64,000 nucleotides of DNA from Oikopleura dioica (taxonomy: Eukaryota; Animalia; Chordata): the NCBI GenBank assembly GCA_907165135.1, contig OU015567.1:8990001-9054000 (forward strand), in the 5' to 3' direction. The translations under genes and the position numbers were made by a program. This document shows, one piece after another, positions 34,055-47,214 of the stretch (positions are counted from its first letter, which is position 1; each line of letters begins with the position of its first letter). Under the pieces are notes generated by a model, which made no database searches, was not told the origin of the DNA, and saw only the letters and a list, made by a program, of their open reading frames with translations.

Positions 34055-35632
34055 TCCTTCTTTTTCAGCTGCCGAATTTGCCTCTTATTGCTGCTTTTCT
34101 TCATCGAAAAAAGCGTGATCTAAAGCAAAGGATTTCGTTTCTCCTTGTTTTCGCGAAGTTGCTGATAATGAGACTGGCATTTTTTTGCTGTACACTGCCG
34201 TTTTCTCCGCAAAGGTAAATATTTATCCTGCGCTCTGGCCGTACCCTTATTGCGGAAGAGAGCGAGACTTCTAGTGACCATTAATAAGCCTTTTCCTTTT
34301 CATGGGCTGACTATTCCTCTGACAAAATTAACAAATAATGACTGTCAATGGACAATGAAATGAACTTTGACCGAAGCGGAAAATTTGTCAATGGGACTCA
34401 AGGCAACAAAAAGCGCAAAACAAGTATAAAGACGAGTTCTTTTGGCTTGATAGAATCTCCTAATCCTGGATTACAAGTTGAATGCAATCATTAGAATTTC
34501 CAATAAGCAAACATTTGGTTTCAAAATGTCAAGGCTGGACTTTCCTTATTGATCTTTTTGGGGTTATCAGGGTCACTTTTGTTTCATTTAAATTTGTGAA
34601 CTTCAGTGATTAGTGTATTACAAACTCATGAGAAAAAAACCGACAAAACCGACACCGACAGTCTGACCGACAATTTGGCGACAAAACCGATAAATTTTTG
34701 TAGGTGCGCATCCTTGTTGGAATGAAGTTTTAGAATGAAGTTTTTGAGTCGTCATTAATAGTAGAGCATGAACGAATATTTGTAATTTGGGATCAGTAGT
34801 TATCATATTTACAGATATGACTGGTTATTGTTACTGTTTACCAAATCAGTGGCCCATAACAACATGCTTCTGGCGCCTCTCTATTTAGGAAAAAATCCCA
34901 AAGACTAGCTTAAATATTAACAAAAATGCACCAGCCATAAACATAATAAGAAATTACCTGAACAGTAGAGTGTCGATTAAAATCCAAAATTTTATCTCTT
35001 TCGCAACTGGCAGATGAAGAGCTTCTTCTATAAATCTAACCTTATCCTTCTTTTGGGCATTTCTGCTTTCTTTGTTCAGTCATAAACGCTCGACAAACTC
35101 TGAAAAAGCGTAAATTCGCTCAGAAGCTGCTGGGTAGCACCGCGTGTACACAAATCCTTGTTGCCTCCGCGCAGAGAAAAAAAAGAAAGATTCCATCATC
35201 TAAATCTTTACCGGGGAGGTCAATCACCGGGTAGCGGCCAAATTTGGCTTTATTAATCTCCGTGGACGACAATAGGACGCCAGCTCATTTTTCTCCCTGT
35301 TTGCAGTCTGAATCTTTACTGCCAAAGTTGCCCGTTGATGAAATAGATTTTTGTTGATGAAGATACTGTGCCTATTCCAGCTACAGTACGCGACCGTACG
35401 CCGCTTTGACACCTACTATCGAAGCCCTAACAGTCTCAAAAGACAATGAATAAAACCACAAGAATAACCTTCTATTTGTTACAAGACAAATACAGAAGTA
35501 TTGATTGCCATTTCTATTCAGAATACGATATCATTTGAATTGTTTCTTCCAGGCAAACATCCTCCTTGAATTGTCCATTTTCCCGCTTTATATTCTCAAA
35601 CTCCTTGACTCACTCTTACAGTAACTTTACTA

Positions 35633-35931
35633 CAAAGTGGTTCAAATAACTTGCAAAAGGCTCACTTCCTAAGCTAGAAGACCTGCTGAAAGAAGACAAC
35701 AATTTTGTAGTTGCCAGAGCCAAAGAGCACCTGGACTTCAAACATGTTATGAACAGAACTTGAAAAAGAAGCTCACCTGTGGGTTGACTCTCTTGGAATG
35801 AGGTCGTCAACTCCACAGGCAAGATGCACAGCTTGATAAACAAGGGCGCCAAACGCGAGACTTCAACCGAATTCGATCTTCGCTTGATTTCGTCGCTGAA
35901 CTCTCGTGAAGGGTCGAATATGCGGGTCGCG
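35633..35931 (-). repeat. 3' LTR (299 bp)
   Basis: Identical by eye to 46547-46845. Confidence 0.95.
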
Positions 35932-35947
35932 TGGCCCCCCAAGCTTC
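35932..35947 (-). other. Polypurine tract-like G run (GGGGGG) then CCA, next to the 3' LTR
   Basis: Minus strand reads GAAGCTTGGGGGGCCA|CGCGAC (LTR start). Confidence 0.6.
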
Positions 35948-36750
35948 TAGTGATGTCGAGCGTTTCGCTTCTTCTTCTTCGGTTCGACGACTTCTTCCTC
36001 CATGATATCGAGCAGTTCGCTGTCCGGCGTTTCAAACTCATCAGACTCCGAGGAGACAACTTCCTTCACGATCTGGCGTGACCGCTTGTTCGCCTTCGTT
36101 GTAGTCGTTACTCGCAGGGAAGATGTCTTCTTCGCCGACTTCGAAACCGCGTTCCGACGAACTCTCTTCTTCGGTTTTCGCGAAGTTGTACCTGATGATG
36201 TTCCTGGTTCGTTAATGAACTCCAGTTCAGGCAGAGGAAGAAGATCGTCGTCGCTCTCGTTCTTTATTTCAACTCCGAGCTCTACTACTTCCTGCAACGA
36301 TGTTTCGAGCGTTGCATTCAACAGCTGCTGGTCCTGTTCATGAACTTCATCCCCAGGGTATCCGTGGGGAAACCAAATGGCGTCTCCACTCGCCATCACT
36401 TCGCCCTGAACTTGAGCTAGCCTGACGTAGACGTCCATCCGGCCCGACAAGCAGTTCCAGATGCCCAACGGGATCGCCTTCTGAAGTCTGCGACCCTTGG
36501 CACCGTATTCATCGCCGGATTGGATGGTAACAGCTTCCGAGAACTTGGCTTCCATCTCGAAATGACGACGGTGCGCCAGTTCCCCCATCAACGACGGTGA
36601 CGAGAGCTCATCCAAGTCCTTCTCCAATTTTTGAAGAATCTTGATCGCCCGGCGTGTGGATGGTCCAAGTTCCTGCTGTCGTTTCTCGTCAAACTCGTGC
36701 GGTTTGAAAGCAGTCCGCAAAACTGCTCTGCTATCTTCGGTGTTCAACAT
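35947..36750 (-). CDS. Accessory ORF of the retroelement (267 aa, sense), basic/acidic tail with NLS-like motifs; function unknown
   Basis: Uninterrupted ORF just upstream of the PPT; RKPKKRVRR and PKKKKR; no signal peptide or TM, so not env-like. Confidence 0.75.
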   Translation of the reverse strand: MLNTEDSRAVLRTAFKPHEFDEKRQQELGPSTRRAIKILQKLEKDLDELSSPSLMGELAHRRHFEMEAKFSEAVTIQSGDEYGAKGRRLQKAIPLGIWNCLSGRMDVYVRLAQVQGEVMASGDAIWFPHGYPGDEVHEQDQQLLNATLETSLQEVVELGVEIKNESDDDLLPLPELEFINEPGTSSGTTSRKPKKRVRRNAVSKSAKKTSSLRVTTTTKANKRSRQIVKEVVSSESDEFETPDSELLDIMEEEVVEPKKKKRNARHH

Positions 36751-37210
36751 CTCTTGAACTTAGTTCGGCTCTGACTGGCGGATTTTCCACTCATCGACCG
36801 TTTTTAAATGGCGATGTTTTCCAGCTTCAAATCTACCTCGAGCGCCATGTTTTCCAGCTGAACTTGTTTTCCAGTCATCGAGTTCATCCGATTTCTCGGG
36901 CTCGAGCCATTTTCAAAACACGCTCGGCCAATCAGCTCGCTACAAATGGAGGACCGTTTCTCCCATTTCGCTGCACTTGCTTGACCTACAGATCTTTCAT
37001 CTTCATCCTTCTGCCAGAGAAATTTTCCAGAGAAAACGTCTCCTATGAAGATTTCATCAAGTTCAACCTTCTTCGTTCTGCAACTTTGAGATGTGTACCA
37101 GTTCTTGCACTTTCTTCTTTTTATATTTAAATTTTTTTATTTTTCGAGAAAGAGTTCTTTCCTTCAAAAACTTCTTTCTTCAGCATAGATCATCGAAGTC
37201 CGTTGTTGTG

Positions 37211-40200
37211 ATGCCTGTCGTTCGATATGTCTCGACCGGCACTTCTGACGACTCCAGGAGCGACTCTTCGTCTTCCCCGCCGTCTTCAACTCCAACTTCC
37301 CTCGTTCTCCGCGACCACTTCTATCCTGAAATGTCGGGGATTTATCGTCGAGATCCAGGCGTTGGCGGTGATTCGCCTTCCTTCTCCACGATTACCGGTT
37401 TCACCGGCATTTCCAGTTCCACTGGCTTCTCTCGCTTCGTTCCGGATGAGCCCGTGCCCATCTTCTCGCTCGCAGTTCTCCCTGTGGCGCAGCCCAGCCT
37501 CCCTGACTACTCAAAGCGGGTGCCCTGTATCGCCAGTCGCCCGAATGCTGACCTCGGGTACGAGCAAGATGAGCTAAGTCGACTACTCTTCGCACCTGGT
37601 AACCCAGCGTCTGGAACCGAGGATTGGATTACTCCCCCTCAAATTCTTGTTGGTTTCCTCAACGCTCGTCACATGGACTCGTCTCATGATGCCGACTTCT
37701 CTCATCCTCGCGACGTGGAGCAGCTTCATCCATCTACCGGAGAGTTGTGGGCTGTGAAACGAAGACGTCTCGGAGCTCCACCACCTACTCCTCGAGTTCT
37801 TGCTGTAGATTCAGGTCGTCCCGCGAACTCCTGGAGTATCCATCCTTCGTTCAGCGCACGATCAACTGCCCGTGATGAAGCTGATCAAGAAGCTACTTGG
37901 CGCGTTGAGTCTGGAACTGTCGATGCTGCCCTTGCCGTTGCAACTCATCGTTCCGTCGGCACCGGGACTTCTTTGGGCTTTCCGGATCTGCTCGCCCGCG
38001 ATGTTGATTCCCTTCGCAGAGGTACATCGCTTCTGGCTCCGATTGAAACCCCTGTAAAATCGCGAAGTAAGTTCATCAATGTTGAAATCAACTAGTAACT
38101 TCGGTCATTTAGATTTGGCGTCTGCTAGTGAAGTTTCTCGTTTTTGCGAGACTTATCGTCATGACCGTGTTTATCGTCAGCTCGGGTTGGAGCGGTATCT
38201 TCCGGTTCTCGGCCACAATCAGCCTATCGACGATACCTGCCACGCGCTGTTTCGCCCAACCCCTGACTCTCGGTTCACCGTACCACTTCTGCCGAAGTCA
38301 TCATCGCTTGGTCTTCCCGGTCCCGACTACTATCCTTGCGAGTGGCCTGATCGCTTCTGCTCTGACCCTGACTACGCTGGATACGACATCGAGGAAGACA
38401 TACAAGCTGCTCGCGACGCGTTTGCTGCTGCCGGAGGCCAGATGCATGTGCTGGAGCATACTCGAGTTCGTCACAACGTGGAGTTGTTTGATCACTCTCG
38501 CGTCTACCGAACTGTAGTCGTAGTTCCTCCAGGTACGATGTGAACCGTTCAACTAGTATTCAACAAGTTCTAGATAATGATGTCCGAACGCAGGGCAATC
38601 TTCTTCCTGATCCGCTCGAAGTTGGCTTGTTCGATCAGCTGACCAAAGGTGGCTACGCTGATGCTTCTGTTCTTGATCGTATCGACTTCGGCAAGTCGCT
38701 CTGTACTCTAGGATCTCCAACCGTTCTTGATACTGCTACCGGAACTGGTTTCTTGGTGAGTCATCGTTTTCGCGCAGATTTTTGACTTCTTCTTTTCAGT
38801 CCGAGCTGTTGGATGATCCACGTTACTGGGATCCAGAGCGCGGTGTGACCCGTCTTGCCGATTTGTTGTCGCCGATTTTACGATCACGGGACTGGTTCGA
38901 CCCTTCTTCTCCTCTTTGGCGCCCCGATATCCAGCAGATTCATCATCGGAACGACTGCTTGCACTGGGGTTATCCGCTCACTGAGGGTCTCGGTGAGAAT
39001 CCCTTCGGATACGAAGGTTTCACGTTAGTGCTTATTAACTTCTGCACTTTCTAATAATTTTATTTTTCAGGTTGGCTGACACGATCTTCGCTGCTTGTCG
39101 TCTTGAGCATCTTTATCCGAAGGAGACTGATCGTCGGGTCATCTGCTTGATTCTTGGCTTGGATGTGAACTCGATTCGTCCACTGTTCCTCATCTCGCCA
39201 TTTGAGATGTATCAGCTTCAGCTCGCCAACATGATCCGCCCTTACACGCTGGTCAATCGAGATGACGGTGACGTACCACGTGATCCTGAGTGTCCTCTTG
39301 GACGAGAACGACTCCGGCTTCTCGATGTTGGTCATTGGTCGACCCAGGCGGCTGATGTCGACGCACATGGCTTAGGAGTCCTCGAAGTTGCCTTGATTGG
39401 ACTCTCCGTTCTTGCAGCTGAGTTCTCCCTGACGCCAATCTGCTCTCTCGATGGTGAACCGGCCTTCTATTTTGATCATAGGGCGCGGTTTCATGATGGA
39501 TTGATCCTCAGCGGTGGCAACGGTGGTCTCAAGCGAGGTGCTTCATTTCTCGCAGCTCTACTTTGTGGCTGTCGCCCGTCCACCGATGCTGATCCGTCAA
39601 CGATTCGTGATGGTGCTTCCGGTTCTGGAACAAGCAAGGAAGTGTCGGCTCCGAAGTGCTACTACGATGCAACTACTGGACGCCGATTCCCGCCCGTTCC
39701 GTCGTTGACTGGACTTCGTCCTGGCGAGTCCGTTGTGGCCCCGTACCAGTCCAAGTTCGTGCGATCCACCGCTTTCTCCGACGAAGCCGAACCTATTCGT
39801 CATGTTGGCATGACTGGCTACTCCTTGAAACGACTTGACGGTGGTGAGTCTTCCAGTCGAATTCTTCTTGGAGTTCCTCGACTCACTTATGTTCGTGAGT
39901 TTGAAGGTGAGTCGACCCTCTCTGTACTTCATTTCGTGACTTGTGATCTATTTAGCAACCGGAGCCGCTGTGTACGCCACTGTGAAGCATTTGCAGCAGA
40001 AGGGATCGTACTCGATGGGTGAAAGAACTTCCAACCGCTTCCCATATCGTAAGTCGATGAAGACTAGTGGGATGAAACCCATTGAATCTTGAATTCAGAG
40101 CTTCTTCCTGCTAGTTTCCAGGAGTGGTACGCGGCTGGAGCTCATTGTAAGTACTATGGAGGTACAACTCGCGACGTTGTCGACACGATTCTCGGTATGT

Positions 40201-40616
40201 TATCCGATGCCGAACGTCTGACTCTCCACGGTGGTGAATGTCTCTTCCCCTTGTTTCGAGGTCGAGAGGTAAATGTTTCTGGTAAGTGTAGTTTGTTGGT
40301 GATTTGATGTTTTACATGATTTGTACTTGATCCGTTGGTTTTTCATCTTGTTTTAGTTCACTTCGGACGCCGTGCTACGTTCGCCAGGAGCTCGACTCGC
40401 GGCTTGTGTCACCGCTACGCTTCGGGGCTTGCCAAGTATCAACTCGACGAACGTGGTGATCCTGTCGGTCTCAATGAAGAGGAGCGTGAAGCTCTGCTAC
40501 GACGTATTGATGCTGATAAAGCCTCAGCTCTTGTCCCTCTGGCGAATCCAGCCGGAGAAACTGGAGGAACTGTTGAATCCTCGACTGCTGAAGATGATTC
40601 GAACTTGGCCGATTGA
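37211..40616 (+). CDS. Antisense 8-exon gene inside the retroelement (~1017 aa), unknown family
   Basis: Exons 37211-38066, 38113-38532, 38574-38755, 38800-39023, 39071-39906, 39956-40048, 40099-40281, 40357-40616. All seven introns are GT-AG, 41-75 nt and phase-consistent; total 3054 nt. AATAAA at 40862. Confidence 0.82.
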
Positions 40617-40885
40617 GCATTATGCTCAGTACTCCGACCTCATCCAACGTAAGTTTTATTGTACGTCGTAGCAAGTTGACAACGGAGTTTGTAGTGATGG
40701 TGTCCTCAACTGGTTTTCACCCAACTTCCGACTGTTCCATCTCTACAGAAACTACCACGGCGGCGGCGAAGAAGCAAGATGAAGAAAAAAATTTGAAGAG
40801 AACTGTTCCTACTCTGTAGTTCCATGTACCAACGCTTGATCGAGTTCCAAACTGCAGGCGTAATAAATTTACCCGTCGTGGCCAC

Positions 40886-43800
40886 TTACATGTAATCTTC
40901 ACTTCTGTAGCGATCTGGTTCTCTTCTTGTCCTTGAGCTTGTGCGGATCTTTAGTTTATCAAGATCCGACTCATTTAACGCAGAAGAAGATGCTACAGAG
41001 TGGAACGAGCAATCCTCGCTCGACTCGTTGTTTTGTACAGTTTCGTCTGTCTCGTTTAGATCTGTTTCTGGTGAAGCTGTCCACACTCCCGTGTCTCCTG
41101 TTGTTAGTAACCGGCTCACGATGTTGTTCGAACACCAAAGCCCGAATGAGGATTTCAGCGTCTTCGACGGAGTTGATTGCTTCGGTGAAACTTCAATTTC
41201 TGGTGCTGGCGTCGGTGGTAATGTCGATTTCGGCCCGAGGGAGATTGCTGAGTCATCGAGAAGGTCGATTCGATGAGCTCTTGGTCCCAGATGGTTCTCG
41301 TCGGCTTCTTCCCATACTGACACGTCTTCAGGTTGCATCAGCCACAATCTAGCCATCGGATTCGACAGTAAGTTATCGCTGACTTTGCGGACCGTGTCTG
41401 ACACGATTGTGTCAATGATGTCGAAGGATATTTCTCGGGGTTTGACGTCGTTCTTGGCGTTGAACTTTCTAGCGAGGCACGTGCGACTCTTCCAGTTTAT
41501 CTCGACTACTTTCCATAATCTGTCGTAGTCTTGCTTGTCCCATCTCGTGCTTAGCCTGATGATATCACCTATTTTTAGAACTTGTTCGTCTTTCTCCGCC
41601 AGCTTCTTGTCGTCAACGATCTTCAAGGGCTTGTTTTTCAACTTCTTCGCCGCGTTCCTTGAATCAGCTGAAGTTCTTCGCCCTTCTCTCTCTTTCTCGA
41701 TCTGAGAGACGAGGTCGTCTACGCTCATCCTGATGTTATCCTGCGTGCCGATCTTTCTACCCGTGAATAGTTCGACCGGGGCAAGCTTGCCGTGCCCCAG
41801 CGTGTGGTTGTACGAAGCGATGGCGTTCTGTACAGCTTGTGGAAGTTCCAATGATCTGTCGTTCAGCTGAGCGTTCAACAACTTGCTCAAGACTGCTATT
41901 CTTCCGTCTTGTTCTGGAATGATGTTTTTGCTCATGTGCGTACTCTCGTACAGCTCGACTTCCATGTTCAGCTTCGCCAGTCTCGACTTCGTTTCTGCGC
42001 TTCGATGAGCTGCATGTTTGTCACATCTAATGATGATTCTCGTGGACTTGCTCTGTAGTGGCGCTAGAAGTTGCTTCACTAGGGTCATGAAATCGACGAA
42101 GTTTCCTGTGTTCACGCTGCTTCTGTCGGCCAGTGCTACGCCGAAGCGTGTGATACCCTCGGTTGCGAAATACAACTTGAAGGGCTGGTTGTTCCTGTCC
42201 GTCCTGTTGATTTCGTCCACCAGTATCAGCTCTCCGATCCTTTTAGGCACTGGAACTGCCTTCAGAGGCTGTGCAACCAGATTGTCTGGTTTCTTCATCA
42301 GGCTGCACTTGTAACAAGATGTTGTGAACCTCAGCGCGTGCGTCTTTATGTTGGATATCTCGAAGATCTTCCTTGTTTTATCGGCTAGCTGTGTTGGAGA
42401 TTGGCAAGTCGTGGCGTTGTGAACCATTCTACACATCTTTACAGCGTGAGGCTCTGGTATTATCACCAAGTCGTATTCTTCCGTTCCGATCCACTTTTTC
42501 ATCCGCAGATGGTTGTTGACGATCCTGGCTTTTCTGCATAACGTCGCCAGTTTCATCTTTTTCGGAGGAGGATTGAGCTTCTTCTCGATGTGTCTCAACG
42601 CTTGCTTCAGGACTGGATCCGTTTCTTGGATTTTCCTGATTGCTCCGCCGTCCTTCAAGAATTCCTCCAGCGATCTCGGCTTCCGCTTCGACGTTACGTA
42701 GCAGACTTTCTCGAAGGCTTCCTTCTCGTAGTCAACTTCATCTACCCAAGAATCTGTCATGTTCCATGCTACATCTTTCATGCTTTCGTCGAATTGGTGA
42801 ACTTGGATTCTTCTGACCGCTTGGTAGTTCTTCAACTTGCTGACCTGTGTGTCGATTTCTTCTAGCTGCTTTTCTGACACGAATGGTACTTCGTTAGAGC
42901 TGGGTGTTCTTGCGATTTTGCAGATCTGGCAATCGTCGTTGCAGTCTTGCATGTGACTCTTGCTTCTCGATATGAAGTCGCACCCAGATATTTCGATGGA
43001 CTTTCCTGGAAGGTGAACAACTGTTACTTGAAGTCCGATGATGCTGCGAAACAGGTTGTTTATGGTCACGATGTCGGATGGACATCTATTCTCGGCCCAC
43101 CTCTTCGCGATACAGTATAATGGTCTCGAGTCCGTGTACACTACTGTAGGCCATTTCGACTCGATGATATACCTTCTCCAGTAGGTTAACGCGCCTATCA
43201 TCCCTGCCGTTTCAAGCATGCAGCTGCTCGCCTTGAACTTTCGTTCTGCGTCTGGGCGTTTTCTCGAGTAGAACTCGCAGACTACGTTCTTGCCGTTCTC
43301 GTCCTTCTGGAACAGTATCGCGCCGCATCCGTCTGCTGATGAGTCTACCACGATGTACGCCTTTTTCTTCGCGTCGAATGGAGTTAGTTCCATCAACTTG
43401 TCCATTGATTTCTTGGCTAGTTCAAGTGCTTCTTCACTTTCTTCCGTCCAGTTGATCTTGACTTTGCCGTCGCCGTCAAGCAGCTTTCTTAGTGGCACCA
43501 GGTACTCCGTTGGTCTGTTCTGGAACTTCGACAGTGGAACGAGTACGCCCAAGAAACTTCTCAACTCGCTGACGGTGGTGATCTTCTCTCTCGAATACTG
43601 GCGGATTTTGTCTGCTTGATGAGGGCTTGGGTAGATCTTGCCGTCTTTTATCACGCTTCCCAAGAAATTCATGCGTTCAGGACAAACGAAGATCTTGCTT
43701 CCTTTCAGCGTGAGCCCGTAGTATTTGCATATGTCGAGAAATCTTGAGATCACCCTCACGAACTCATCTTCCGTTTCTGCAACTAGATGAATATCGTCTG

Positions 43801-44983
43801 CATACCTCAAGCACCATTTCTCGATCGGGCTGAAAATCCTCAAGAATGCTTCGCGCATGAATCCCATCGAGGCGATCCATCCTTGCGTGCATCTTGTATA
43901 CACCATTACGCCTTGGCGCGGGTGATATACGCCGAACCATTTCCACAGGTCTTGGTTCATCGGTAGTTGGAAAAACGCGTTGCTGACGTCGCACTTCATC
44001 GAATACTTGAACTTTGACGCCTTCGCCGCTTTCTGAAGAATGTCATGGAGATCGTCCGTTACCATCGGCGGTGTTTTGCTCCATTTGTTGACCGTGTTGT
44101 GCGCTTGTGTGACGATTCTGGCGCTCTGTGCCAGTGGAATTGCGTTCCCATCATCGTCTTTCTTGGACACAACCATCAGCGGTATGATGTTACGTGGTCT
44201 TATGCCGTATTCGTCGGGGAACACCAGTATCTTGTCCCTGTACAGCTCGTCGAGATGGTCACAGATCACGTCCTTTTTCTCTTCGGACTGCTTTTCGTGC
44301 TTTCTTCTTGGACCGATGTTCTCCTCCTTGATTTCAACGTTCATTTCAGCGTTTATGTTGAAGTTTTTGTTGAGGCATCCGATCCTTTTCTTGAACACGA
44401 CTGCGTACTCATCGCTCTTGAAGACTGACCACAATCTCTTCGCTGAAGCTTCGCCTACATCTCCCATTGTTATATCATCAACCGTGGTAGAATTCTCGGC
44501 TTTTTGGCGCATCTTTTCGATCTTCGCCTTGTAGATCTTCCTCGAATCTGGTTCGAATTTGGTCTTGTCCAATTCATCTGCTTCTCCAATCTTCCACACC
44601 TCCTCGGTACCGTAGAAGACTTTGCCAGCATCGTTAAACGTGACCGACTTCTCCACAAGATTGACGATGGTTTTCCCCTTCAGATGTGGGAGGCCCATCA
44701 GCAGACCTTGTAGATTTTCGATGACTACAGCTCCTTCGATCCAAACTCGTTTGTTGTTTATCACGATCGCGAAGCTGGCCACCTTGTTTCTGTTGAAATT
44801 GTCGAATACGCCGAGTCTTTTCCCGGCGGCGCATCTTATGTTCCTGCTCTCCCATCTGAACAGGTGCTTTATCTTCTTTAGTGGTTCCAGCCCGATACAT
44901 GTACATTCAGCGCCAGTATCGAGCTGTACGTGCAGAGGAACGAGGCCTTCGTCATTACCAGATTCTGCTTGAGTCCAGAACAT
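40886..44983 (-). CDS. pol: Pol polyprotein (aspartic protease, RT, RNase H, DDE integrase)
   Basis: LDTGAEC; KCDVSNAFFQ...QG...YADD; VVDSSADGCGAIL; integrase LILVD...IRCD-x35-E. Confidence 0.96.
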   Translation of the reverse strand: MFWTQAESGNDEGLVPLHVQLDTGAECTCIGLEPLKKIKHLFRWESRNIRCAAGKRLGVFDNFNRNKVASFAIVINNKRVWIEGAVVIENLQGLLMGLPHLKGKTIVNLVEKSVTFNDAGKVFYGTEEVWKIGEADELDKTKFEPDSRKIYKAKIEKMRQKAENSTTVDDITMGDVGEASAKRLWSVFKSDEYAVVFKKRIGCLNKNFNINAEMNVEIKEENIGPRRKHEKQSEEKKDVICDHLDELYRDKILVFPDEYGIRPRNIIPLMVVSKKDDDGNAIPLAQSARIVTQAHNTVNKWSKTPPMVTDDLHDILQKAAKASKFKYSMKCDVSNAFFQLPMNQDLWKWFGVYHPRQGVMVYTRCTQGWIASMGFMREAFLRIFSPIEKWCLRYADDIHLVAETEDEFVRVISRFLDICKYYGLTLKGSKIFVCPERMNFLGSVIKDGKIYPSPHQADKIRQYSREKITTVSELRSFLGVLVPLSKFQNRPTEYLVPLRKLLDGDGKVKINWTEESEEALELAKKSMDKLMELTPFDAKKKAYIVVDSSADGCGAILFQKDENGKNVVCEFYSRKRPDAERKFKASSCMLETAGMIGALTYWRRYIIESKWPTVVYTDSRPLYCIAKRWAENRCPSDIVTINNLFRSIIGLQVTVVHLPGKSIEISGCDFISRSKSHMQDCNDDCQICKIARTPSSNEVPFVSEKQLEEIDTQVSKLKNYQAVRRIQVHQFDESMKDVAWNMTDSWVDEVDYEKEAFEKVCYVTSKRKPRSLEEFLKDGGAIRKIQETDPVLKQALRHIEKKLNPPPKKMKLATLCRKARIVNNHLRMKKWIGTEEYDLVIIPEPHAVKMCRMVHNATTCQSPTQLADKTRKIFEISNIKTHALRFTTSCYKCSLMKKPDNLVAQPLKAVPVPKRIGELILVDEINRTDRNNQPFKLYFATEGITRFGVALADRSSVNTGNFVDFMTLVKQLLAPLQSKSTRIIIRCDKHAAHRSAETKSRLAKLNMEVELYESTHMSKNIIPEQDGRIAVLSKLLNAQLNDRSLELPQAVQNAIASYNHTLGHGKLAPVELFTGRKIGTQDNIRMSVDDLVSQIEKEREGRRTSADSRNAAKKLKNKPLKIVDDKKLAEKDEQVLKIGDIIRLSTRWDKQDYDRLWKVVEINWKSRTCLARKFNAKNDVKPREISFDIIDTIVSDTVRKVSDNLLSNPMARLWLMQPEDVSVWEEADENHLGPRAHRIDLLDDSAISLGPKSTLPPTPAPEIEVSPKQSTPSKTLKSSFGLWCSNNIVSRLLTTGDTGVWTASPETDLNETDETVQNNESSEDCSFHSVASSSALNESDLDKLKIRTSSRTRREPDRYRSEDYM

Positions 44984-45027
44984 TGGGATGTCCTTCTTGT
45001 CTGTCGCAGTAATCTGGTTGACGCTTT

Positions 45028-45034
45028 CTAGTCA
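45028..45034 (-). promoter_or_regulatory. Stop-codon readthrough signal UGA-CUAG joining gag and pol
   Basis: The gag stop TGA (45032-45034) is followed by CTA G and 16 open in-frame codons up to the pol ATG. Confidence 0.8.
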
Positions 45035-46492
45035 ACTCAACTGCCACATTCCAGCTCCTCCGTTTTCTGATGCCGAATCGCTGGAGCGCTGTTCATGGAC
45101 TTGTCCGACTTGTTCCTCTTTCTTGTGCATCGTTCTTATCATCTTCAACGCCTTCTTTCTATTAGGGCAGTCGTAGGGCTTGTGATCGTACACGTTCCAT
45201 TTTCTGATGGCTACTTTGCAGTGCCAACATGGAGTGCTTTCTTTCTTGGAGCCGGCTGAGTCCTTGTTGTCCTCATTGCCGTCCTTTGGCTGCTTCTTCG
45301 CGCGATCGCTGTCATCTCGACCGTTGGAATATCGACCTCCGCGACCACCGCCGCGACCTCTGCCGCCGCCTCCGCCTCTTTTCGACCCTTTTGACTTATC
45401 ACCGATCTTCGCTACCAATTCCTCGTTTTGATCGTGATCACCACTTTCTTCAGTTATCTTCTTGACCGTTGCGATTCGCTTCGGGCATCTCCTGATTTCC
45501 GCGGCTGCGATTTCTTGGTAGATCTTGGCGTTCTTGAAGAATTCAACTGGAGTCGACGTCTTCCCCGTTTTTTTGTGGAATTCGTCTTCAATTTTCTCGA
45601 TTGTTCTAGCGTCCACCGTGATCAGCGCACAGCACGTTGCAATCCTTGACAAGATCTGGGTCTCAGCTTCTTTCTCGCTCAACGTTTTCTTTGAGCCGAT
45701 GGCGTTGTTTCCTGATATCTTGTCCGTCCCCTCTGACTTACAGAGGTTCTTTTTGAACTCCGTGAAGAACGCTCTAGTCATCGTGGTGAAGTTCAACCTG
45801 CTGCTGTTGATAGCCATCATATTGCGGAGGGACTCCATAGTTGTGACCATGTTCCTTCCTGTATTCAAGCATGCTGCGCTGTCGTTGTGAACGACGGTGT
45901 TGGTGAAGTGTTCAAGTGAGTAGAATTGACCTCCTTCCGCTACAGCATCCCGGAGTACTCTTATCTCACCTTCACTCCCGTTTAGTAGAGCCAACATGGC
46001 TTCCCGCGCTAGGCGAGCCGCCTCTCGAAACTTGTCTGCGGTGCTCTTCTTGGCGTTCTTGATCTTTTCGAAGAAGTGCGATGATTTCTTGGCTGCTTCT
46101 TTCTTCGCTTCTTCGGATGATATTCCTGGATCCCTGACTTCTAGCCAGTTCCTGGTTTCCAGTACGTACGCTCCATTCGTCACGAATTTTAAGTAGCCGC
46201 TGTCATCGTCCTCTACGTCGTCTAAGTCCTGCAGGACTTTCTCGCTGACCATTTTCTCGAGTTCCGTCATCGAAACTGGGATCCCGTAGCTTGGTAGAAC
46301 TGCACCGCTCGTGTCATCCGTCGACCATAACCACCGGCTGTTGGTAATCATGTCTCCCGGAACTTCCGCGGTTCCTGCACTTCTCATTACTGCGATGATC
46401 TTGTCCTTCAGACGGTTCCTATTTGCTAGATCGCGAGGTTCAATCATGCCACTTCCCGCGGCGATTATCGAGCTTAGGTTCTTGCTTGTCAT
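45032..46492 (-). CDS. gag: Gag (486 aa) with an RGG patch and an extended zinc knuckle
   Basis: First ORF after the PBS; GGGGRGRGGGRGGR; C-x2-C-x11-H-x4-C near the C-terminus. Confidence 0.88.
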   Translation of the reverse strand: MTSKNLSSIIAAGSGMIEPRDLANRNRLKDKIIAVMRSAGTAEVPGDMITNSRWLWSTDDTSGAVLPSYGIPVSMTELEKMVSEKVLQDLDDVEDDDSGYLKFVTNGAYVLETRNWLEVRDPGISSEEAKKEAAKKSSHFFEKIKNAKKSTADKFREAARLAREAMLALLNGSEGEIRVLRDAVAEGGQFYSLEHFTNTVVHNDSAACLNTGRNMVTTMESLRNMMAINSSRLNFTTMTRAFFTEFKKNLCKSEGTDKISGNNAIGSKKTLSEKEAETQILSRIATCCALITVDARTIEKIEDEFHKKTGKTSTPVEFFKNAKIYQEIAAAEIRRCPKRIATVKKITEESGDHDQNEELVAKIGDKSKGSKRGGGGGRGRGGGRGGRYSNGRDDSDRAKKQPKDGNEDNKDSAGSKKESTPCWHCKVAIRKWNVYDHKPYDCPNRKKALKMIRTMHKKEEQVGQVHEQRSSDSASENGGAGMWQLS

Positions 46493-46530
46493 GTTCTTCG
46501 GGGTAGTTCAACTTTACTCGTGAGTTCAGA

Positions 46531-46546
46531 CCTTTATCAGTCACCA
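46531..46546 (-). other. Primer-binding site (TGGTGAC..., compatible with the 3' end of tRNA-Trp)
   Basis: TGGTGACTGATAAAGG directly follows the 5' LTR. The first 7 nt are complementary to the GUCACCA end common in eukaryotic tRNA-Trp. Confidence 0.6.
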
Positions 46547-46845
46547 CAAAGTGGTTCAAATAACTTGCAAAAGGCTCACTTCCTAAGCTAGAAGACCTGC
46601 TGAAAGAAGACAACAATTTTGTAGTTGCCAGAGCCAAAGAGCACCTGGACTTCAAACATGTTATGAACAGAACTTGAAAAAGAAGCTCACCTGTGGGTTG
46701 ACTCTCTTGGAATGAGGTCGTCAACTCCACAGGCAAGATGCACAGCTTGATAAACAAGGGCGCCAAACGCGAGACTTCAACCGAATTCGATCTTCGCTTG
46801 ATTTCGTCGCTGAACTCTCGTGAAGGGTCGAATATGCGGGTCGCG
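46547..46845 (-). repeat. 5' LTR (299 bp)
   Basis: Direct repeat of 35633-35931, followed on the minus strand by PBS and gag. Confidence 0.95.
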
Positions 46846-47214
46846 CTATCTACTGCAATCTGCAGTAATTTTAAAGAAATCTTAAATCCGGATTTATTCT
46901 ACACATTTGGAGTTGCTCAGGTGTTTCATGACAAAAGGAGCAAAAGACGGAGAATATGGCTGCAGCTTGTTTTTGTTAGAATTTCTGGGACGGGGCCAGT
47001 TACGATACTCTTTATGAAATTGTAAAACTCGGGCTAGGGAATACCTTCATCTTCATCCCAGCTTCTTTCTCATAGCTGTCTCTAGAATAATCTATCCTTT
47101 TCGGCTTATCTAGAGACTTTGTGAAACTTTGATTCTAGATAAGTTTGAAAGCTTTCCTTTCTAGACTTGAAGCCGTGGCTAAAGAAGTTGTCTTTTTCTT
47201 TCTCACTTTTGAAA

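Follow-up and report, generated by a model that had tools for sequence, protein, structure and literature searches.

Antisense accessory genes are known from plant gypsy elements and from a few retroviruses, and their roles are mostly unknown. In plants, the aORF-3R genes of Tat/Retand elements (maize Grande gene23, rice RIRE2 and Silene Retand) are antisense open reading frames (ORFs) that occupy the interval between pol and the 3′ long terminal repeat (LTR) (PMC7264820, PMC11963269); their function is unknown, and some of them are nuclear and transcribed from a promoter of their own. Among retroviruses, HBZ of human T-cell leukaemia virus type 1 (HTLV-1) and ASP of human immunodeficiency virus type 1 (HIV-1) are protein genes on the minus strand, and HBZ, which is spliced and nuclear, acts on both viral and host transcription. 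The chordate Oikopleura dioica is host to the Tor elements, reportedly described by Volff et al. in 2004, which possess a Ty3/gypsy-like pol. Here we analyze a 64,000-nucleotide stretch of O. dioica OKI2018_I69 chr2 (chr2:8990001-9054000), referred to as the window, in whose numbering positions are given unless another sequence is named. It contains an 11.2-kb Ty3/gypsy-like LTR retrotransposon, element A, which lies on the minus strand at 35633-46845 and shares with Tor both its host and the type of its pol. On its plus strand, between pol and a sense-strand accessory ORF that we call orf3, element A carries what is very probably a genuine spliced protein-coding gene of a Tor-like Ty3/gypsy lineage of Oikopleura. 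This predicted gene resembles the plant aORF-3R genes in its position between pol and the 3′ LTR, in its orientation antisense to gag-pol, in its retention across copies and related families and in the unusual length of the element's internal region, and it resembles HBZ and ASP as a protein gene on the minus strand of a retroelement. The OKI2018_I69 assembly in which it was found comprises 64.3 Mb in 19 scaffolds (PMC8008620).

A predicted eight-exon gene antisense to gag-pol

An earlier note on the window, made from the sequence alone, had proposed a plus-strand gene of eight exons and seven GT-AG introns in this interval, and exact joining of the exons, a chance control and the public annotation all agree with it. 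Joined, the exons amount to 3054 nt, or 1017 codons with a single terminal stop at 40614-40616. The introns (38067-38112, 38533-38573, 38756-38799, 39024-39070, 39907-39955, 40049-40098 and 40282-40356) are 41-75 nt long and are all GT-AG; their donors include GTAAGT and GTGAGT, and their acceptors TTTCAG and TTTTAG. Because six of the seven intron lengths are not multiples of three, the antisense frame needs splicing to stay open. Exon 1 (37211-38066, residues 1-286) encodes a serine-rich N-terminus and a KRRRL motif at residues 183-187. It is followed by exon 2 (38113-38532), exon 3 (38574-38755), exon 4 (38800-39023), exon 5 (39071-39906), which is the best conserved, exon 6 (39956-40048), exon 7 (40099-40281) and exon 8 (40357-40616).

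For the chance control, we scored the best ATG-to-stop chain that could be assembled with consensus introns. The plus strand of the gene region scored 3005, compared to 350 for the sense strand of the same stretch, 494 for the strand opposite pol and 938 for the best of 20 shuffles. The length-maximising scripts behind these scores over-extend gene models by adding spurious introns and an upstream start, and they were used as a chance control only. The public AUGUSTUS model of the locus (CAG5112250.1, Oidioi.mRNA.OKI2018_I69.chr2.g6485; P0006), which is 1065 residues long, shares the ATG and the first six introns of the eight-exon model. The two part at intron 7, where the public model uses a donor at 40269; it then reads exon 8 in another frame, includes a further intron (40649-40694) and has its stop codon at 40817-40819. 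Both candidate donors, GTAAAT at 40269 and GTAAGT at 40282, are good and lie 13 nt apart, and alternative splicing at this intron is possible. Unbiased tblastx comparisons with relatives weakly favor the exon 8 frame of the eight-exon model (E = 0.001 and 0.012 vs 0.01).

Copies and relatives of the element

The earlier note had held that the gene moves with its element, and the copies of A found elsewhere in the genome bear this out. A second full copy is present at PAR:802256-813464, on another chromosome; it is 99.87% identical to A across 11.2 kb, sits in unrelated flanks and has a target-site duplication of its own (TAA). Near-identical 11.2-kb copies with different flanks and different duplications indicate that the transposed unit included the antisense gene with all of its introns. 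Within the gene, the substitutions that separate the two copies comprise two in exons, both synonymous, and a third in an intron.

More distant relatives carry the gene as well. Element B, from the same genome (PAR:5852244-5863592), has identical 274-bp LTRs and a CTT duplication, and its proteins are 52% (pol), 28% (gag) and 28% (orf3) identical to those of A. Between its pol and orf3, on the opposite strand, lies a homologue of the antisense gene with 28-40% identity, and tblastx comparison of A and B over the pol-orf3 region finds conserved blocks only in the frames of the antisense gene and none on the sense strand. Measured between these two elements, the rate of evolution of the antisense gene is close to that of gag and of orf3 and exceeds that of pol. 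Beyond the host genome, an HMMER scan with exon 5 against 1.84 billion representative proteins matched nothing but two annotated O. dioica proteins and four short ORFs from marine metagenomes (40-54% identity), and a profile search of 5.8 billion proteins gave three matches, adding two marine-metagenome fragments. In the marine-metagenome contigs L043 and L044, a pol ORF that is 48-58% identical to the pol of A lies beyond the homologue on the other strand and converges on it; in a further contig the homologue is convergent with a 984-aa ORF that has RVT_1 and RNase H matches; and L045 and L047-L049 carry more of the antisense gene. Overall, a homologue occupies the same place and orientation, convergent with pol, in B and in marine-metagenome contigs of three lineages. 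One contig, L046, from which a 49-aa cluster member (P0007) comes, proved to be unrelated. Separately, we noted a relic at C3:2446498-2446894 in which a plus-strand fragment resembling exon 3 is joined directly to a minus-strand pol fragment (66% identical over 70 aa), a rearranged or deleted arrangement.

These distributions bear on whether the gene belongs to the element family or instead reached this one element alone, by recent transduction from the host or as a later nested insertion. LTR elements are known to capture host genes, as in Bs1 and others (PMC7264820), and the antisense protein contains no retroelement-like domain. Nevertheless, such an origin appears exceedingly improbable given the recurrence of the same gene, with shared introns, in B and in environmental relatives as divergent in pol as described above. 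Whole-genome searches with exon 1, exon 5 and residues 400-932 matched only the two copies, B and the C3 remnant, so that the host paralogue for which the earlier note had suggested a search was not found, and we found no internal repeats or termini flanking the antisense gene inside A. More broadly, genome and protein searches found no homologue outside these elements. The plus strand of the gene is also pyrimidine-rich and A-poor (14% A at third codon positions), a composition that gag and pol share and the host flanks do not. This agrees with the C/T-rich codon usage that had been remarked upon at the outset, and an element-like composition of this kind fits long residence in A-rich retroelement RNA. 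Together, these data support the view that the antisense gene is old in the element lineage, as the earlier note had suggested, and is neither a recent capture nor a nested insertion.

Intron positions shared among relatives

We modeled the gene in its relatives, which are 30-50% identical to it, using a purpose-written protein-to-DNA spliced aligner that is blind to the introns of the query; run on the window itself, the aligner recovers the antisense model exactly. Five of the seven introns (introns 3-7) recur at the same codon and in the same phase, with good splice consensus, in two to four lineages each, and intron 1 recurs in one. Specifically, intron 1 (aa 286, phase 1) is common to L047; intron 3 (aa 486, phase 0) to L045 and B; intron 4 (aa 561, phase 2) to L043, L045 and L047; intron 5 (aa 840, phase 1) to L043, L045, L047 and B; intron 6 (aa 871, phase 1) to L043, L044 and L047; and intron 7 (aa 932, phase 1) to L044 and L047. 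For intron 2 there is a near match only, one codon off, in B (aa 427, phase 1). The chance of a random intron landing on one of the seven codon-and-phase positions is approximately 0.003.

Some introns of the relatives have no counterpart in the window copy. L043 (686-744) has a well-supported one near aa 754, and weaker ones are predicted at aa 745-755 in L045 (2410-2463), B (5859444-5859397) and L044; an extra intron at this point in relatives indicates intron loss or gain within the element-borne gene. In element B, exon 5 is interrupted by another, canonical intron (GTAAGT...CATTCAG). The remaining predicted "introns" that match no position in the window copy, mostly with poor signals, are probably indels.

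Introns that lie antisense to a retroelement transcript are not spliced from it, and they therefore survive reverse transcription. In the genomic RNA of A, the introns of the antisense gene would be present as reverse complements to which the spliceosome is blind, and they would be passed unchanged through reverse transcription to every new copy. The retention of introns in each new copy would thus follow from the gene being antisense to the element transcript.

Selection on the antisense reading frame

To gauge constraint on the frame, we compared contigs L044 and L045, which are 90% identical over 732 nt. Of the differences between their exons, 32/44 fall at codon position 3 and one falls at position 2, and the Nei-Gojobori method gives a synonymous divergence (dS) of 0.273, a nonsynonymous divergence (dN) of 0.029 and a dN/dS of 0.105 over 189 codons. 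The two predicted introns in this stretch differ at 0.24-0.26 changes per site compared to 0.06-0.09 in the exons and so evolve 3-4 times faster. Third-position bias, low dN/dS and faster introns point to constraint on the frame of the antisense protein rather than on the RNA or the opposite strand. By this comparison, the predicted antisense frame is under strong purifying selection; a dN/dS below 1 and shared introns, for which the earlier note had proposed to look in sibling elements, are both seen among these relatives.

Several observations weigh against a functional protein-coding gene of an Oikopleura element. First, in the second copy, antisense exon 5 has lost 1 bp and pol has lost 2 bp; each of the four indels that separate the copies falls in a homopolymer or short repeat of a Nanopore-based assembly and may for that reason be an assembly error. 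Second, the contigs that supply much of the comparative evidence (L043-L045 and L047-L049) come from marine metagenomes. Third, in four RNA runs under the species label (three bulk oligo-dT and one single-cell), a single partial read matched anywhere in 35600-41500 at 90% likeness, and the antisense gene had none. Since that interval includes LTR and pol sequence, the animals sampled may simply lack the element, and the result does not indicate silence; O. dioica is a complex of very divergent cryptic lineages (PMC11067885). Fourth, with two good intron 7 donors and the differing frames to which they lead, the last exon is ambiguous (donor 40269 or 40282) and the C-terminus of the predicted protein is uncertain. 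Finally, no domain, fold or homologue assigns a function to the protein.

Two of these observations, the frame-breaking indel of the second copy and the lack of reads on the gene, would also fit a frame that is conserved but no longer useful, either as a decaying passenger or as an artefact of gene prediction, with any effect exerted only through pairing of antisense RNA with the genomic RNA. Control of retroelements by antisense RNA is well known (PMC7264820). We nonetheless judge this explanation very improbable, since the L044-L045 comparison shows selection on the protein frame, the frame has been kept open over 1017 codons and seven splice junctions, and the indels lie where Nanopore assemblies may err.

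Features and possible roles of the antisense protein

The protein belongs to no family that we could recognize, in keeping with the first impression of it. Pfam searches with the exons and, at E up to 10, with the whole public model returned no family (TRP28 and bZIP included), and searches of PHROGs, PDB profiles and the ESM Atlas gave no match. AlphaFold predictions made with shallow alignments had a mean predicted local distance difference test score (pLDDT) of 43.3 for residues 420-932 and 42.1 for residues 556-932. The best-conserved part is aa 450-700, with the motifs DxDxHGLG and FDHxARGHxGLxxSGGxGGxK, which are assigned to exon 5. The KRRRL motif is kept in L045 and lost in L047.

By analogy with the plant antisense aORFs and with retroviral antisense genes, the protein may be an accessory factor for the element's own life cycle that controls transcription or silencing in the nucleus, a role to which we give roughly even chances. 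A different possibility is that it serves transmission or particle biology, as a substitute for an envelope protein or as a factor for cell-to-cell or germline entry. The Tor elements are retrovirus-like and express env from an internal promoter in tissues adjoining the germline (PMC4402516), and in A the env position holds only the 267-aa orf3. The antisense protein is, moreover, large and has a conserved amphipathic hydrophobic helix (HGLGxxExxxxxLxVxxAE). However, this hydrophobic stretch retains conserved glutamates and is thus not a clear membrane span, no signal peptide was noticed when the sequence was first read, the partly conserved KRRRL points to the nucleus, and the Pfam, PDB profile and PHROGs searches revealed no similarity to viral glycoproteins. 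We therefore view an envelope-like or entry role as unlikely, though second to the regulatory one.

Candidate expression signals

The antisense gene and orf3 are divergent and face each other head-to-head across a 460-bp spacer (36751-37210), which from its sequence is a candidate internal, perhaps bidirectional, promoter. It contains a CCAAT box at 36928-36932, a TATA-like TATATTTAAA at 37122-37131 and an acceptor-like TTCAG at 37179-37183, which ends 27 nt before the ATG; the earlier note had pointed out this TTCAG as well as the AATAAA at 40862-40867, and both are in place. An upstream in-frame ATG at 37091 precedes the TATA-like box and so would not be included in an mRNA started there. 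The AATAAA, a candidate poly(A) signal on the plus strand, lies 19 nt before the pol stop codon of the other strand. In Tor elements, promotion from internal sites beyond pol has been documented (PMC4402516). In the mechanism that we propose, antisense transcription would start from an internal promoter in the spacer shared with orf3, and the transcript would be spliced and then polyadenylated by means of the AATAAA at 40862, just before the end of pol.

Architecture of element A

Element A is bounded by a CTA target-site duplication (35630-35632, with its partner at 46846-46848), as read from the sequence, and by two LTRs of 299 bp, the 3′ LTR at 35633-35931 and the 5′ LTR at 46547-46845, which the earlier note had called apparently identical and whose identity was confirmed by repeat comparison. 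All of the following sense features lie on the minus strand. A primer-binding-site-like sequence, TGGTGACTGATAAAGG (46531-46546), directly follows the 5′ LTR, and a polypurine tract, GCTTGGGGGGCCA on the element sense strand (35932-35944), abuts the 3′ LTR; both were read from the sequence. Between them lie an ORF in the gag position (486 aa, 45032-46492), taken from the ORF list and from comparison with B, then pol (1365 aa, 40886-44983), and finally orf3 (267 aa, 35947-36750), an accessory ORF in the env position without a Pfam family match.

In both A and B, the 5′ LTR is directly followed by a primer-binding-site-like sequence that begins with TGG, and the 3′ LTR is directly preceded by a G-run. 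Their LTR ends are not TG...CA; on the sense strand, those of A read CGCGAC...CTTTG and those of B read CGTGG...CCACG. All three insertions (3/3) have 3-bp target duplications, namely CTA in A, TAA in the second copy and CTT in B, and we note that this is shorter than usual for Ty3/gypsy elements. The flanks of B are themselves repeated at 86-89% identity (PAR 5851625-5852089 vs 5865337-5865799 and 5848038-5848328 vs 5865835-5866130), marking a duplicated or repeat-rich region.

By Pfam, pol contains RVT_1 at aa 308-443 and RNase H at aa 512-630. Pfam and PDB searches did not find an integrase in its C-terminal 504-704 aa (window 40889-43000). This C-terminal region does align with the pol proteins of other Oikopleura elements that give weak Integrase_H2C2 matches, which together with the lack of a Pfam or PDB match suggests that the integrase of A is very divergent. 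The nearest other pol proteins in the genome are 24-31% identical over the region from reverse transcriptase to integrase. The missing Pfam integrase and odd LTR ends led us to consider a DIRS/Ngaro-like tyrosine-recombinase element, which was set aside in light of the simple terminal direct repeats and the 3-bp duplications at all three insertions. In the host flanks of the window, we also observed inverted repeat pairs, 91-92% identical, at 31531-31810/31917-32195 and 7302-7456/9118-9271.

Discussion

If the gene is what it appears to be, a chordate retrotransposon lineage has carried a gene of about 1000 residues, interrupted by seven or more introns, through many cycles of reverse transcription, and has kept intron positions between relatives that share only 30-50% of their residues. 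A retroelement would then be able to maintain a complex, host-style gene. In public annotation, both copies (chr2.g6485 and PAR.g8582) appear among the ordinary host genes, without names, and this has a bearing on gene counts and on studies of orphan genes in the species. Because the element is young and present in very few copies, in a laboratory animal whose genome is 64 Mb, the function of its antisense gene is open to direct testing. In full-text literature searches, whose coverage is incomplete, we came across no description of an animal LTR retrotransposon with an intron-rich antisense gene. It is tempting to generalize, though we do so tentatively and consider the idea doubtful as it stands, that Oikopleura LTR retrotransposons regularly carry intron-rich antisense genes as functional components. 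The orphan family of element A would then be one example of an undescribed class of chordate retroelement accessory genes that have internal bidirectional promoters and are needed for spread or for escape from silencing.

Among known systems, the plant aORF-3R genes are described as uninterrupted ORFs, and introns are not mentioned for them (PMC7264820, PMC11963269). By contrast, the Oikopleura gene resides in a chordate, encodes approximately 1000 residues, has seven to about ten introns and is accompanied by an extra sense ORF before the LTR. Most Retand aORFs carry TRP28 (PF04195), whereas the Oikopleura antisense protein is without any Pfam match. HBZ, which has a single intron and a bZIP product of some 200 residues, starts in the 3′ LTR and has no sequence relation to the Oikopleura gene; the latter begins about 1.3 kb inside the element, beyond orf3, and has seven introns and no bZIP or other known domain that we could find. 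ASP, like HBZ, is small, driven by the LTR and unrelated. In the Tor elements, the accessory gene is a sense env, and no antisense gene is described, the word "antisense" being used only for hybridisation probes (PMC4402516). The lineage of A is distinct from Tor, with a length of 11.2 kb and LTR ends of CG...TG rather than TG...CA. A final comparison is with the antisense reporter cassettes of retrotransposition assays, in which survival of an intron through RNA depends on its orientation relative to the element transcript. Those cassettes are artificial, and their intron is oriented for removal from the element RNA; the predicted introns of the Oikopleura gene are natural and oriented for retention, and they would thus illustrate, in nature, the rule that orientation decides whether an intron survives.

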